From the sequence record AP018399.1: DNA of 64,000 nt. One strand, written 5' to 3'. The notes beneath the pieces were generated by a model. That model did no database searches. It was not told the origin of the DNA and saw only the letters and a list, made by a program, of their open reading frames with translations. Positions 1-5,181 of the stretch are shown one piece after another (within the stretch, counting starts at the first letter, position 1; every line of letters begins with the position of its first letter). A program made the translations under genes and the position numbers.

Positions 1-316
1 ATTCCGCTTCCGCCTTGCGGACAGTAAGGATGCGACAGGTCATGCCCGGTTCCGGGGTCACAAACATATCTTCACCTAGGAAGACAATGCTACCCTCCAC
101 ACGCGGCTTCTTGTCCGTCTGTAGCAGAACTTCCTTCTTGCCGTGGAGACTGGAACAGCCCAAGTACCACGGACCCTCATCACGGATGCGAGTATAACCC
201 ACATAGATTAGACCAGCAACCAGAATGACGGAAGCAATCTTCAACTGCTTCCACTCGGCAGAGTTCGCAGCCCGTTCGCGTTTGATTTCTTCCCGCAGCT
301 TCTTAAACCAACGCAA
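1..316 (-). CDS. hypothetical membrane-anchored protein, 3'-truncated by window edge
   Basis: TTG at 316 preceded by GGAGG; reads MRWFKKLREEIKR...IASVILVAGLIYVGY (one TM segment); frame open to base 1; not in ORF track. Confidence 0.5.
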   Translation of the reverse strand, partial: MRWFKKLREEIKRERAANSAEWKQLKIASVILVAGLIYVGYTRIRDEGPWYLGCSSLHGKKEVLLQTDKKPRVEGSIVFLGEDMFVTPEPGMTCRILTVRKAEAE

Positions 317-1052
317 CTTCGGCCTCCGGCTCTTCTTGTTTTTCTATGTGCAAGCCCACGTACTCACGCATTTGCGAGAAGACAGGGATGTGTACATCAA
401 CCTGCTTCGAAATGCTATTGTAGCACAGACCACGCTTTTTGTGAATCGCAATGTCGTTCCAGTTCACCGGAACATCCATCTGCATCAGCAAGTCCTGAAC
501 CTGCTGATTGTTCAGGCCATGACACTTCTTATGGCCTAGGTAGTGCGTAGCCACAGAGCGGATACTGTTACGCACAGCATCGTTCTGTCGCCAAATGAAA
601 TAATTTACAATCTCATCCTTCGGCAGCGAGAAGACACGCGAATCGAAGAATGCCAGCGGCTTGTCTTCGAAGGCATCAGCAGCCAGCTTGTTGAACATGC
701 CAGTCGCCAGAGACGCGGACACGCTCACCATCTTCTGGACATTGCCATCGAACCATGCATCGGTCGTCAGGTTGTCGTAGTCACGTAGCAGGATGGAGAT
801 TTCATCCGACTGGCAGTAAGCGAAAACTGCACCTTGGATATTCTCACATAGAAACTTCATGGTGTTCGCCATGATAGCGATGAACGTATCATCGTGGGGA
901 CGGTCAAGTCCCTTCGTCCATGTGTGGAATGCCTTACCGTCCAGACGGATGATTGCGGGCGTGCGTCGCATCAACTTGATACGATTCACGTCCTCATACT
1001 TCTTCATGCGGTCGCCGAGACTATCGCCGCCCTTGGGTGCAGATTTCGCCAT
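303..1052 (-). CDS. thg1: tRNA(His) guanylyltransferase / Thg1-like 3'-5' polymerase
   Basis: LGDRMKxYE, IIRLDGKAFH, AYCQSDEIS, WFDGNVQK, FDSR, YFIWRQxDAxRNS, KRG motifs. Confidence 0.92.
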   Translation of the reverse strand: MAKSAPKGGDSLGDRMKKYEDVNRIKLMRRTPAIIRLDGKAFHTWTKGLDRPHDDTFIAIMANTMKFLCENIQGAVFAYCQSDEISILLRDYDNLTTDAWFDGNVQKMVSVSASLATGMFNKLAADAFEDKPLAFFDSRVFSLPKDEIVNYFIWRQNDAVRNSIRSVATHYLGHKKCHGLNNQQVQDLLMQMDVPVNWNDIAIHKKRGLCYNSISKQVDVHIPVFSQMREYVGLHIEKQEEPEAEVALV

Positions 1053-1588
1053 TACTTTTTCTTCCGAAGTTTGATATTCAACTCTGTTTCCAGTGTATCA
1101 TAGAACGCTGGTCGAGCCAAATACTTTTTGTGTTCGCGAAGCGTAATGGCTGCACGTCGCTTGATTTGTTCGAAGATTCGGTCCCATACCGCTTCGGATA
1201 GCTCCGGAGCCATCGCAGCCTGAACCATGCGACCGCTATCCAGTGTGATGTTATGGCGACCACACCATGCACCGTCGTAGTCAAAACTGACCCGGTATTC
1301 CTTCATGGTCGGCAGCTTGTTGCGTGAGTAGGAATCGTAAGGACAGACCTTGATTTCCCAGCCCTGACCCAAGTTCAGTTCCCAGCCCTCATCCACGCTG
1401 TACTTCTTCTCCGGAATGTATTTGTAATCATTCGGAGTGAACTGCATGATATCGAAAGGCTGGCCGTACAGCTTTTCGAACAACGGCCAGCCCTTCGGGG
1501 CAAGTCTCAGGAAGTCGAACAACTGAATGGCTGCATCAGCCGCTTCAATGTTCGACATGGATGGGATAGGAGGGGAAGCGATGGTCAT
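1052..1588 (-). CDS. hypothetical protein
   Basis: 178 aa, stop/start overlap with thg1. Confidence 0.7.
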   Translation of the reverse strand: MTIASPPIPSMSNIEAADAAIQLFDFLRLAPKGWPLFEKLYGQPFDIMQFTPNDYKYIPEKKYSVDEGWELNLGQGWEIKVCPYDSYSRNKLPTMKEYRVSFDYDGAWCGRHNITLDSGRMVQAAMAPELSEAVWDRIFEQIKRRAAITLREHKKYLARPAFYDTLETELNIKLRKKK

Positions 1589-1851
1589 TAGAATTGAATA
1601 TTGTAAAGGCGTGTCAGGTGTTCCGTGATGCGCTCCCGAATGTGTGCCTTCACACGCTTCAACTCGGTAGCCTCATCTTCCGATTCAAACTTCCAGTCAG
1701 CATTGCTCCACACCAACTGGTCCATGAATGTGATATGCACATTGTAACCGTCCGTGGTCCCAAACAACATGGGGACAGTACGGCCCGGCATCCCCTCATT
1801 CACCATGAGGTTCATCTGGTCGTTCAGTTCGCGGACGATATCGAAGAGCAT
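1588..1851 (-). CDS. hypothetical protein
   Basis: 87 aa, AGGAA RBS, coupled to next gene. Confidence 0.7.
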   Translation of the reverse strand: MLFDIVRELNDQMNLMVNEGMPGRTVPMLFGTTDGYNVHITFMDQLVWSNADWKFESEDEATELKRVKAHIRERITEHLTRLYNIQF

Positions 1852-1878
1852 GACTGCATTCCTGCTTTGTGAGCCTTA

Positions 1879-1906
1879 ATTATAGCACACAAAGTCAGCT
1901 TGTCAA
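1879..1906 (-). promoter_or_regulatory. sigma70-type promoter
   Basis: TTGACA-16-TATAAT on minus strand. Confidence 0.7.
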
Positions 1907-2128
1907 CTACTTCCCACGGGAGTTCGCTATCATCTTCCCTAGGACGAAAAGAATCAGGGCAGTCGGCCAGAAGGTTCCGTAGACTATGGAGTTCGTGACA
2001 CCCTTCAAGATTAGCTCTTCCCGCTCAGGGTCAAAGTAATCCAGCTTCCGGTATTCAAGCCACGTCTCCAATCCCACCCAGCTAGCAACCAACAGGCCAC
2101 AGATTACATAAGTGAGATACGGCTCCAT
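1907..2128 (-). CDS. small membrane protein
   Basis: two hydrophobic segments, FWP motif. Confidence 0.65.
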   Translation of the reverse strand: MEPYLTYVICGLLVASWVGLETWLEYRKLDYFDPEREELILKGVTNSIVYGTFWPTALILFVLGKMIANSRGK

Positions 2129-2162
2129 ACCTTGTCCTCAATCCATTGAACGAGTTCGGCAA

Positions 2163-2510
2163 TCATTCGCGCGGGAAGTCCTTGAAATCGGACTTCTGTT
2201 CAAGCTCACCATCAATGCGAACCAGACCGAAATAATTGCCGTTAATCGGTTCCTCATTGGAGAGTTCACAGTAGGCAGCATTCACCATGCCCACATTCTC
2301 GCCAGTCTCCACCAGCCGGACACGAGGCACACCATGAGCAGCATCACAGCGCTCAACCAGTGCAGCCAGAGCATCAGCATTCATCGGACGCTCCAATCGA
2401 CGCTGTTCACGAGCATGATAGCTCAGCGGTCCACTGATAGTAGACCACATGAAAGTGAACGCCAGTGTCAGCGCACCGAGCATGACAAAAAAGGGAGCTT
2501 TGTTATTCAT
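2163..2510 (-). CDS. hypothetical exported/membrane-anchored protein
   Basis: N-terminal hydrophobic helix; 4-nt overlap with upstream gene. Confidence 0.65.
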   Translation of the reverse strand: MNNKAPFFVMLGALTLAFTFMWSTISGPLSYHAREQRRLERPMNADALAALVERCDAAHGVPRVRLVETGENVGMVNAAYCELSNEEPINGNYFGLVRIDGELEQKSDFKDFPRE

Positions 2511-2716
2511 TTACGTTTCGTCTTCCGTAGCTTGTGAGCAGGGAACATGGTGACAGCTTCACCCTGTTCGTTCTTGATGATTTTCAATTGCAATCGACGC
2601 TTGCACTTCGGACACCGGTGAAACGGTACCTTGTTCATGCGAAGCACCTTGATGTACACGTCCACAGGCTCAGGAGCCGACATACACCAGTCTTCACCTT
2701 GCCTATATCCGACCAT
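2507..2716 (-). CDS. small hypothetical protein with CxxC
   Basis: RCPKC, basic C-terminus, coupled to neighbours. Confidence 0.55.
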   Translation of the reverse strand: MVGYRQGEDWCMSAPEPVDVYIKVLRMNKVPFHRCPKCKRRLQLKIIKNEQGEAVTMFPAHKLRKTKRK

Positions 2717-3024
2717 TAGAAAGTAGACCAGCTTTCAGTGGTCCCCTCCGTCGTCACTTCATTCGAAGAATGACTGTTCGATTCCGGATGTTGTTTGAAG
2801 TCACAGTACACGTTGTACCATTGACCCATTCGCTCGCCACGGTCCTGCTGGTAACCCAACAGAGTTCCATTGAAACCCTTGCACTTCTCAATCTGGGCGT
2901 CCAATTCCTCTTGCGTGACATAGGTAAGAATCTTGCCCGTTTCCGGGTCAAAGACCTGTCCCTCTTGCAAACGAGAGCAAGCCGTCAAAGCCAGTAGTAG
3001 CGAAATCGCGAGTAGAGTCTTCAT
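2716..3024 (-). CDS. putative lipoprotein
   Basis: lipobox-like LALTAC after hydrophobic signal. Confidence 0.7.
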   Translation of the reverse strand: MKTLLAISLLLALTACSRLQEGQVFDPETGKILTYVTQEELDAQIEKCKGFNGTLLGYQQDRGERMGQWYNVYCDFKQHPESNSHSSNEVTTEGTTESWSTF

Positions 3025-3031
3025 GATGAAA

Positions 3032-3060
3032 ATTATAGACTAGCTATTAAGACTTGTCAA
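3032..3060 (-). promoter_or_regulatory. sigma70-type promoter (probably leaderless transcript)
   Basis: TTGACA-17-TATAAT; ATG 7 nt downstream. Confidence 0.8.
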
Positions 3061-3391
3061 CACTTTCAGACATGGCTTTCAGTGCAGCTTTCTCTACCTT
3101 GCGAACGTGCAACCATACACGCACCCACTTAGGCAGCAACACCACACCGACTACAGCACCAATTCCAAACAGAACAGGAATGGCACCAATCGCCAACGGC
3201 CATAGGAACGCCACCACAGCAGATAGGACGATACCCGTGACGACTCCACCCCAATGGGTACGCTCACTGTTAAACTCATGGACAAGCCAACCTGTCACCA
3301 ACAAACCAACAATGAAAAGCAACCAGTTGAACCACTCATTGGCAGTCTGGAAATTCGATGCGACAGTGAACCAAGCTTCGGGTGAAAACAT
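3047..3391 (-). CDS. membrane protein
   Basis: three hydrophobic segments, LWP motif; ATG at 3391 (MFSPEAW) with GAGG RBS preferred to 3448. Confidence 0.7.
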   Translation of the reverse strand: MFSPEAWFTVASNFQTANEWFNWLLFIVGLLVTGWLVHEFNSERTHWGGVVTGIVLSAVVAFLWPLAIGAIPVLFGIGAVVGVVLLPKWVRVWLHVRKVEKAALKAMSESVDKS

Positions 3392-3419
3392 GAAAAGGAA
3401 TCCTCTTTTGATGCTGACA

Positions 3420-3448
3420 ATTATAGGGCACAAAACCAACTCTGTCAA
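3420..3448 (-). promoter_or_regulatory. sigma70-type promoter
   Basis: TTGACA-17-TATAAT. Confidence 0.8.
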
Positions 3449-3449
3449 G

Positions 3450-4125
3450 CACGCATCCGCCAGCCAGTAGAGGGACAGTCCCCCGGCCTGCCTCCCATTT
3501 TACACGAAAAATTATAGTTGTCAACCCCTTGACAGGCAAATTCAAATGGGGTAGTCTTCTCGTGCCGAAAATTGCAACCACCAGCGCTCGGCTAAGGTGT
3601 GCTGGTGAAGTAGTACACCACTGACCTATCTCAATAGATTAAGGATGTTAAGACTATGTGAAGGATACGTTAAAATTTGGTTAACTTAACGGAAACTTAA
3701 CATTTCAGGCCGATTTGTTAAAAGTTCGTTAAAGTTAAAACCTCGTTAACTGACGCTGACGAGAGCCTACCGACTGTCGGTGATAGTTGGTCCGCACATT
3801 TGAAAGCGTAAGTTGATGATTGGTCTAGACTTTTTCAGTCTGGCGAAATTTTGGTGCGTCAGTTGGCGGCACTCTTACTAGCTCGGACTAAATCATTTAG
3901 ACCTTTAACTGACTCCATACCAAGTCCAAATCACATCTATCTCATAGTGATATCACTTTGATATCATACTGACGCTTAAATTATTAAAGTAGCTGTAACA
4001 AGGTTTCCGTGAATACTCTACCATAATTCAACAGGTTAGCAACCTATTTCATTAATTGCTCCACTTTTTCAACACCTTCCCACGAGAACAAATAAGTCCT
4101 AACGCAAGCGTTAGGCTTTGGCCCT
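3450..4125. other. largest non-coding gap, between divergent gene blocks; candidate origin or control region
   Basis: no credible ORF; nine GTTAA/TTAAC sites at 3647-3750; palindrome AGTGATATCACT 3946-3957; repeated ACTGAC; hairpin 4098-4115. Confidence 0.5.
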
Positions 4126-4446
4126 ATGAGCATTCTTACTATCCCTGAGCAAGATGAGGCTATTGCCTTGCAGCGGTTCTTGAACATTGCCAATTACATT
4201 GGCAAGAATGGTACACGTTATCTGGTTATAGGCCATAGGGAGTATGGTGCTGTTCCTAAAGATGACTGTGTGTTCATTACCTATGAGGACTTCAAGACGC
4301 GGCAACGTGATGTATGGGAGTTGGTTGTTCCTACCAGTTGGTATGGGAGCAACGGGCTTGATGAGATTAAGGGTATTGTGATTGACGAGAAGACTTTCCT
4401 GAGTGACTTCCATGAGTTCATTGATGACTACCGTGAATCTGACTGA
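4126..4446 (+). CDS. array paralogue 1 (EFxEFxxDY family)
   Basis: QRFLNIANYI near N-terminus; C-terminal DFHEFIDDY. Confidence 0.8.
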   Translation: MSILTIPEQDEAIALQRFLNIANYIGKNGTRYLVIGHREYGAVPKDDCVFITYEDFKTRQRDVWELVVPTSWYGSNGLDEIKGIVIDEKTFLSDFHEFIDDYRESD

Positions 4447-4810
4447 TACTGACCGGGAGGTCTATGCGTCTCGTTTGGGGATGGTGATAGATTCCTTCAT
4501 GGAGTTGGCTAGTAACCCGAATGATGTATTTGCTTATGAGGACCGGGGTGGTGTGGTTGGTTTGTTGCATCGTGCCAGTGGAGTTCGTATTGGGCTATGG
4601 CATCGACCGGATTACAACGAGGATTCTGGGCGTACTTCTTACAAGACGATGTTGATGTGGGAAGACGTGGTGATACAGGCTCATGGATTGCCTGCCTTTG
4701 AGGATAACCGGGAGGAAGGGCGAGGCTATGAGCCGGAGAGGATGATGGGTGAGTTCATGGAGTTCTTGGATGATTATCATCCGGGTTGGGAGGAAGGTGA
4801 ATGTTCCTGA
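4424..4810 (+). CDS. array paralogue 2
   Basis: C-terminal GEFMEFLDDY; start 4424 or 4433 (track gives 4403). Confidence 0.8.
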   Translation: MTTVNLTDTDREVYASRLGMVIDSFMELASNPNDVFAYEDRGGVVGLLHRASGVRIGLWHRPDYNEDSGRTSYKTMLMWEDVVIQAHGLPAFEDNREEGRGYEPERMMGEFMEFLDDYHPGWEEGECS

Positions 4811-5181
4811 TGACGATTCCTGATGGGGAAGGATTGGTTGCTACCCAGCGGTTCTATAACCTGTTGAAGAGCATCTATGTCTATGGGACTAACAAGCCTG
4901 CGGGTGGTACTGTCTTGCGGATAGGCGACTTCATAATGGAGTTGGCTCATACGGCCATTACTGAGCAGGTTGATGGGCTGGATGATGTAGTGACTCGGGT
5001 GAACATTACCTTTGTTCTAGGGGACGACGAGTTCTTGATTGACAAGGGTGTTCATTGCAATGATGAATGGGACAAGTGGGTGTTGGGTCAACCTGTTCGT
5101 TGTCAGGAAGTTCCTAGGGAAGAGTTTGTGGGCGAGTTCATGGAGTTCTTGCTTGACTACTACCCGGACTATGAGATATAA
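4801..5181 (+). CDS. array paralogue 3
   Basis: GGAGG RBS; TIPxxExxxAxQRF shared with paralogue 1; GEFMEFLLDY. Confidence 0.85.
   Translation: MFLMTIPDGEGLVATQRFYNLLKSIYVYGTNKPAGGTVLRIGDFIMELAHTAITEQVDGLDDVVTRVNITFVLGDDEFLIDKGVHCNDEWDKWVLGQPVRCQEVPREEFVGEFMEFLLDYYPDYEI

Follow-up and report, generated by a model that had tools for sequence, protein, structure and literature searches.

The gene-free gap studied here almost certainly spans the inner (right-hand) border of the direct terminal repeat (DTR) of XacN1, a Xanthomonas jumbo phage in which this repeat measures 65,875 bp. The window, i.e., the whole 64,000-nucleotide stretch that was analysed, corresponds to positions 62,001-126,000 of record AP018399.1 with 100% identity, and window positions are obtained by subtracting 62,000 from those of the record. 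The coordinate of the DTR border has been published previously, and what is new is the anatomy of the border region. The setting, cutting and duplication of very long phage repeats is a poorly understood process, and the published right end can now be tied to compact, conserved cis-elements, namely an array of GTTAA sites 166 bp inside the end and a twin palindrome ~80 bp outside it.

Yoshikawa et al. (PMC5852040) placed the two copies of the XacN1 repeat at record 1-65,875 and 318,796-384,670, based on the discrepancy between a 318,795-bp assembly and a 390-kb band in pulsed-field gels (PFGE), a twofold read depth over ~70 kb, and restriction mapping in combination with direct sequencing of both virion DNA ends. 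The right end was mapped by such direct sequencing of virion DNA (PMC5852040), and the primer used for it maps to window 3210-3239. During replication, XacN1 concatemers are cut at window 3875|3876, which yields the right end of the packaged DNA. Window 1-3875 is identical to the last 3,875 bases of the record, which stops there; since this identity reflects how the record was constructed, the independent evidence for the border is that of PMC5852040. A genome-end or terminal-repeat site had been among the readings offered for 3450-4125 in the original prediction, and it proved right in place, as the published DTR end lies within the gap. When XacN1 was reported in 2018, its direct terminal repeat was the longest among sequenced viruses. 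The run-based evidence used here consists of assembled Logan contigs; breaks in the contigs from public runs fall at repeated promoter and terminator elements and not at the terminus.

Of the gap, 484 bp lie within the DTR and 250 bp in unique DNA. No other annotated gap in window 1-56,000 is as large, and transcription diverges from it, as first described. Neither of the two flanking genes matches a Pfam family or has a homologue in the related phage Xoo-sp13. The elements of the region are the following (L112 is a metagenome contig from a close relative).

3047..3391, minus strand: ORF133, last gene of the DTR
3392..4125: non-coding hub of 734 bp, flanked by ORF133 on the minus strand and by ORF134 on the plus strand
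3420..3448, minus strand: leftward promoter P1, a perfect sigma-70 consensus (TTGACA, 17 nt, TATAAT; score 12/12), placed for ORF133
3476..3534, minus strand: leftward early-promoter module P2 (TTGACA at 3524-3519, TAAAAT at 3502-3497, conserved transcript start)
3529..3557, plus strand: candidate promoter P3, back-to-back with P2 (TTGACA, 17 nt, TAGTCT)
3647..3750: GTTAA array of nine sites, 33% G+C, candidate protein-binding platform with its centre 166 bp inside the DTR end
3875..3876 (record 65,875): inner border of the left DTR copy, which in the right-hand copy is the physical right end of virion DNA (PMC5852040)
3888..3900: 13-bp palindrome CTAAATcATTTAG, which begins 13 bp beyond the end of the DTR, present in L112 and absent from Xoo-sp13
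3946..3966: twin TGATATCA palindromes with a spacing of 11 bp, some 73-91 bp beyond the end of the DTR
3976..4009: conserved block after the twin palindromes, with no second copy in XacN1 or Xoo-sp13
4088..4115, minus strand: repeated terminator-like hairpin with a 7-bp stem and a U-rich tail on the minus strand
4126..4446, plus strand: ORF134, first gene of the unique region

Each of the nine GTTAA/TTAAC sites of the array was recovered at its predicted coordinate. With both strands counted, 12 of the 53 GTTAA hits of the window lie in 3647-3750, and the pentamer is rare across the window as a whole (53 observed against 113 +/- 12 expected). Active avoidance of GTTAA by XacN1 was considered and rejected, as the deficit is mostly a matter of low TTAA content (observed/expected 0.78 under a maximal-order Markov model). 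Genome-wide counts, for which the XacN1 and Xoo-sp13 genomes were rebuilt from record stretches, gave 232 matches in the 318,795-bp XacN1 genome unit, with 11 in the densest 120-bp window and 3 in the next best; the density of the array has a Poisson probability of 5e-20, or 2e-14 after correction for all positions. Exact 11-bp spacing between GTTAA sites occurs in XacN1 only within the array, and in Xoo-sp13 only within the homologous array. Four pairs are spaced in this way, and eight of the sites mirror one another about position 3709, with their centres at +/-10, 21, 27 and 38. Of the helical phasing originally proposed, the four 11-bp pairs were retained, whereas a single phase common to all sites was not found, the sites instead being mirrored. 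The possibility of a cruciform or hairpin in the array was rejected because its DNA folds no better than shuffled sequences (z of -1.1 in XacN1 and +0.25 in Xoo-sp13); symmetry in the placement of the sites together with the lack of a stable hairpin suggests protein binding rather than a DNA structure.

Only Xoo-sp13 (MN047793.1) within the phage collection has DNA similarity to the region. Its own gap of ~900 bp between divergent genes (record 71,049-71,948; L005:2923-3822) aligns with the XacN1 hub block by block, with the following identities.

3472-3511: promoter block (P2), 80% identity to Xoo-sp13
3672-3751: array, 65-75% identity
4072-4111: hairpin, 85% identity
stretches between the conserved blocks: 22-52% identity

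Identity reaches 72% over 3952-3991, which comprises the twin palindromes and part of the next block, and the bases at the cut itself (3860-3890) are only about 45% conserved. As ORF133 and ORF134 lack homologues in Xoo-sp13, the DNA of the hub is more conserved than its flanking genes. Conservation of motif spacing had been suggested as a check on the array, and in Xoo-sp13, a phage that lacks both flanking genes, the site positions are indeed preserved base pair for base pair: measured from the symmetry centre, its sites lie at -59.5, -48.5, -26.5, -20.5, -9.5 and +9.5, and those of XacN1 match within half a base. Between the two phages, 38/47 bases in the sites are identical (81%) compared to 37/69 between the sites (54%; p=0.003), and the genome-wide GTTAA maximum of Xoo-sp13 is also found at the homologous hub (11 against at most 5 elsewhere). 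The array shows no listed differences in contigs from three metagenome runs, in which ~1% of the bases differ over 3503-4008 vs ~7% over 2800-3200, and it is unchanged in L112, which is 93% identical. Its size ranges from 9 to 13 sites over 100-160 bp. These statements on conservation draw on only two independent relatives.

A pattern search with the core of the array returned 0 viral contigs and 12 metagenome contigs, one of which (L112) is a true relative, and a search with the 17-nt promoter palindrome returned 99 viral contigs, all unrelated. No GTTAA cluster is present at 24 loci found via a neighbouring Thg1-like gene. Close relatives of XacN1 (95-99% identical over window 2800-5000; runs X1, X2, X4, X18) occur in soil, surface and wastewater metagenomes, one of them with a 24-nt insertion directly before the hairpin at 4090. 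A hidden protein gene in the gap was rejected, since none of the reading frames contains an ORF that is also found in Xoo-sp13; translated similarity appears in several frames on both strands over the same DNA blocks, which places the conservation at the nucleotide level. Xoo-sp13 itself carries an unannotated open frame (L005:3640-3822) with its ATG about 11 nt past the hairpin, which has the start position of XacN1 ORF134 and encodes an unrelated protein.

By sequence, the repeat is filled with host-type early promoters, and the last two of them lie on the DTR side of the hub. Both hexamers of P1 are kept in Xoo-sp13. P2 belongs to an early-promoter module with at least 12 copies in XacN1, all of them within the DTR, and each consists of TTGACA, about 16-17 nt, TAAAAT and the conserved transcript start GGATGGCAGGCCGGG.

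XacN1 record 3.2, 5.2, 11.3, 12.8, 13.5, 15.0, 16.9, 17.4, 22.5, 54.8, 61.6 and 65.5 kb: early-promoter modules, the last being 3476-3534

Many copies are followed 20-40 nt downstream by a G+C-rich hairpin, which could be a leader or attenuator signal. P3, in which the second hexamer is replaced by TAGGCT in L112 and by TATGCT in Xoo-sp13, is a weak candidate because part of its palindrome belongs to the repeated promoter module. Of the strongest sigma-70-like promoters in XacN1, 55/82 lie in the DTR, which makes up 21% of the genome unit, and their density falls to the right of the hub; in Xoo-sp13, 63/96 of the strongest matches lie to the left of its hub. This concentration suggests that the repeat is the region read by host RNA polymerase, with the hub as its right edge.

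On the unique side, the palindromes predicted at 3946, 3959 and 3888 are all present. The twin TGATATCA palindromes, which from their sequence look like an operator, are the only such pair in XacN1, and the only pair in Xoo-sp13 occupies the homologous place with the same spacing. No second copy of the GTTAA array, the twin TGATATCA or the 3976-4009 block was found in either genome. The arrangement TGATATCA-N3-TGATATCA also occurs in at least 120 viral contigs (IMG/VR loci L177-L296) in unrelated contexts, none of them with a GTTAA cluster; many of these copies share one conserved context adjoining (AGAGAC)n repeats. The hairpin that had been noticed 10 nt before the first gene to the right was confirmed at 4098-4115, with the ATG at 4126. 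The terminator-like element to which it belongs is present in 4 copies in XacN1 and 6 in Xoo-sp13.

XacN1 record 19,100, 22,960 and 26,819: other copies of the terminator-like element
Xoo-sp13 record 19,016, 21,753, 26,371, 71,743, 78,513 and 97,150: copies of the terminator-like element

The hairpin at 4088-4115 has the G+C-rich stem and following U-rich tail of a predicted intrinsic terminator, and in four copies per phage conservation extends to this minus-strand tail and not to the plus-strand side; the hairpin therefore looks like a leftward terminator. The core of the element, an inverted TAACGC / GCGTTA, is letter-identical in the two phages, which differ by 9% in G+C, and its conservation appears to exceed the need of a generic terminator.

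Tentatively, the GTTAA array is interpreted as a protein-binding platform that serves the recognition or processing of the genome end. Several copies of a phage DNA-binding protein would assemble on it, the most likely candidate being the small terminase subunit (none is annotated in XacN1) or another end-recognition factor, and the array would mark one place per genome unit for setting up end processing or packaging. This reading is preferred because the array is unique, lies 166 bp from the cut, has no counterpart at the left border and is conserved in its geometry. The twin palindromes would be an operator in their own right, bound by a dimeric regulator that controls transcription into the unique region. 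Known terminase sites adjoin their cuts, as exemplified by lambda cosB with its R sites and by SPP1 pacL/pacR, and the T7 concatemer junction contains pacB, the phiOR promoter and short repeat arrays. Likened to cosB or pac sites, the XacN1 array shares with them its occurrence once per genome unit and the presence of several short phased repeats no more than a few hundred bp from a defined cut, and the hub shares with the T7 right end a promoter that points toward the end. The array is, however, without sequence similarity to the lambda, SPP1 and T7 sites, and unlike the cosB and pac systems, XacN1 must also duplicate or spare 66 kb per cut. The binding hub of the original prediction receives indirect support, from an array that is unique in the genome and keeps its site spacing in a relative. 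If the array is a terminase or end-recognition site, it would offer a handle on packaging in this clade of jumbo phages.

A purely transcriptional role would fit equally well with the location of the array downstream of a candidate rightward promoter, where it overlaps a weak promoter-like match at 3648-3676 that has a counterpart in Xoo-sp13. It is possible, though rather doubtful, that the hub serves transcription control only, the array and the twin palindromes being operators for phage or host regulators such as an H-NS-like silencer, which would adjust the activity of the divergent early promoters and control whether transcription continues past the DTR into the first genes of the unique region; the DTR end would then share the gap by chance. 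Such control is in keeping with the two consensus leftward promoters and the candidate rightward one in the hub, as well as with the 11-bp twin palindromes, a classic layout for the operator of a dimeric repressor (in the viral contigs L268 and L203 the motif lies just 3' of sigma-70-like promoters, in the fashion of an operator). It also agrees with the absence of any sigma-70-like promoter between 3876 and ORF134, which suggests that ORF134-136 may depend on transcription initiated inside the DTR. Operators, however, usually recur at several promoters, and each of the two motifs is present only once per genome; no GTTAA array lies near the ~55 other strong promoter-like sites of the DTR, among them 11 further copies of the early-promoter module, and 9 to 13 sites over 100-160 bp would be large for an operator. 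A start of replication at the hub is unlikely. T4 origins of the oriF/oriG type consist of a promoter and a downstream AT-rich unwinding element, and the XacN1 clade is a distant relative of T4. The hub resembles these origins in that an AT-rich stretch, the array with only 33% G+C, lies downstream of the candidate promoter P3, and differs from them in that this promoter is weak, the stretch is an ordered site array and not just easily melted DNA, and neither a skew nor a depth signal accompanies it. An iteron-type origin would be another version, and in a third, the hub would be the fixed point at which the right DNA end invades the other copy of the repeat and thereby primes recombination-dependent replication that proceeds into unique DNA; since the ends are fixed and the repeat is 66 kb long, right-end strand invasion, by extension from T4 biology, would have to land exactly here. 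The replication origin of the original prediction was not supported by the further analysis, which revealed no global turning point in GC skew, DnaA-box cluster, IHF site or long iterons. A local change in the sign of the skew, from -0.10 to +0.24, does occur at the hub, but it coincides with the switch in coding strand, and the dip in cumulative skew is small and local in XacN1 as in Xoo-sp13, in line with the divergent transcription. Neither phage has a global extreme at its hub: those of XacN1 are located at 265 kb and at the unit junction, those of Xoo-sp13 at 55 kb and at the record end. Only two one-mismatch DnaA boxes, unpaired, and no IHF site are found in the 734 bp; the repeated units are 5-6 bp cores in mirrored 11-bp pairs and not direct repeats of 17-22 bp, and no initiator-like neighbour was detected, the flanking ORFs being without a Pfam match. 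Read depth over the whole repeat forms a twofold plateau and not a peak (PMC5852040).

By analogy, the closest described system is Repeat Region 3 of T5, the region of the injection stop signal, an untranslated stretch that closes the left terminal repeat on its inner side (Davison, bioRxiv 10.1101/866236). Both this region and the XacN1 hub are long and untranslated, sit at the inner border of a long direct terminal repeat and run over into unique DNA (by 270 bp in T5 and 250 bp in XacN1); both are dense in palindromes and in short direct repeats, one of which is present in nine copies, and both are better conserved among relatives than the ORFs of the repeat itself. In either phage the repeat contains first-expressed genes and strong host-type promoters, with which that of XacN1 is packed. 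In contrast, the paired DnaA boxes which mark the T5 signal, situated inside 131-bp inverted repeats, are absent from the XacN1 hub, whose motif is a GTTAA mirror array unlike that of T5, and the repeat measures 66 kb in XacN1 vs about 10 kb in T5. Two-step injection is known from T5, and for XacN1 the comparison is made from sequence only. It is decidedly unlikely that the hub is a T5-like stop signal, where the 66-kb repeat, carrying early genes and all the tRNAs, would enter first, transfer would pause at the inner end and early proteins would release it; the DnaA boxes are lacking, and such a first step would be six to seven times that of T5. That XacN1-type jumbo phages deliver their DNA in two steps with the GTTAA array as a new, DnaA-independent injection stop signal is very improbable. 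The least credible alternative is that the hub encodes a structured non-coding RNA, transcribed from a candidate promoter near 3565 toward or off the repeat end. The plus-strand RNA 3562-3875 has a predicted fold of -109 kcal/mol (z = -5.85, compared to only -2.35 on the minus strand), in which the first six bases are paired with bases 3867-3872, close to the end of the repeat. The homologous segment of Xoo-sp13, however, folds no better than chance (z = -0.79), no Rfam 15 family matches at E <= 1 over 3000-4600 on both strands, and conservation resides in short site-like blocks and not in paired arms. Contigs from one RNA run cover 3394-3554 and 3915-4086 with none across 3555-3914, which is weak evidence. 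A conserved structured RNA was rejected given that, of the two phages, only XacN1 has the strong fold and that no Rfam family matches; beyond XacN1, the fold is confined to its close relative L112.

Some of the smaller motifs noted originally are present without being conserved. AACTGACGC at 3748 does have an inverted copy at 3856, but the pair is not kept in Xoo-sp13, and in 734 bp chance alone would produce about one inverted pair of 9 bp. Copies of ACTGAC were found at 3620 and 3908 as described, and the third is at 3968, not 3969; they are not conserved in Xoo-sp13, and two are already lost in the 93%-identical metagenome relative.

The comparison also bears on the genome ends of Xoo-sp13. 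Its record starts at the exact nucleotide homologous to the left terminus of XacN1, and joining the end of the record to its start recreates the conserved unique|repeat junction. Together with the position of its hub at ~71.5 kb, this indicates that the 309-kb record very likely represents a single genome unit with an unreported, collapsed repeat of ~71.5 kb. The true genome is then predicted to be ~380 kb, and the repeat, if real, would be longer than that of XacN1. Whether the array keeps its distance to an end can be judged from one phage, XacN1, in which the right end has been mapped.

The left junction has conserved elements of its own and no GTTAA array. A cut-site motif common to both borders was suggested by a 14/20 match by eye just before the two cuts and was rejected: an unbiased scan of the window with the left border did not rank the right border, shared k-mers were at the shuffled expectation, and the best local alignment fell on the GTTAA array (p about 0.03 in XacN1 and 0.2 in Xoo-sp13). 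The left cut of XacN1 is flanked by a direct repeat, CCAAACTTGTTT, at about -70 and +55 (L004:1929-1945 and 2055-2071), of which the -70 copy is not conserved in Xoo-sp13 and the +55 copy is.
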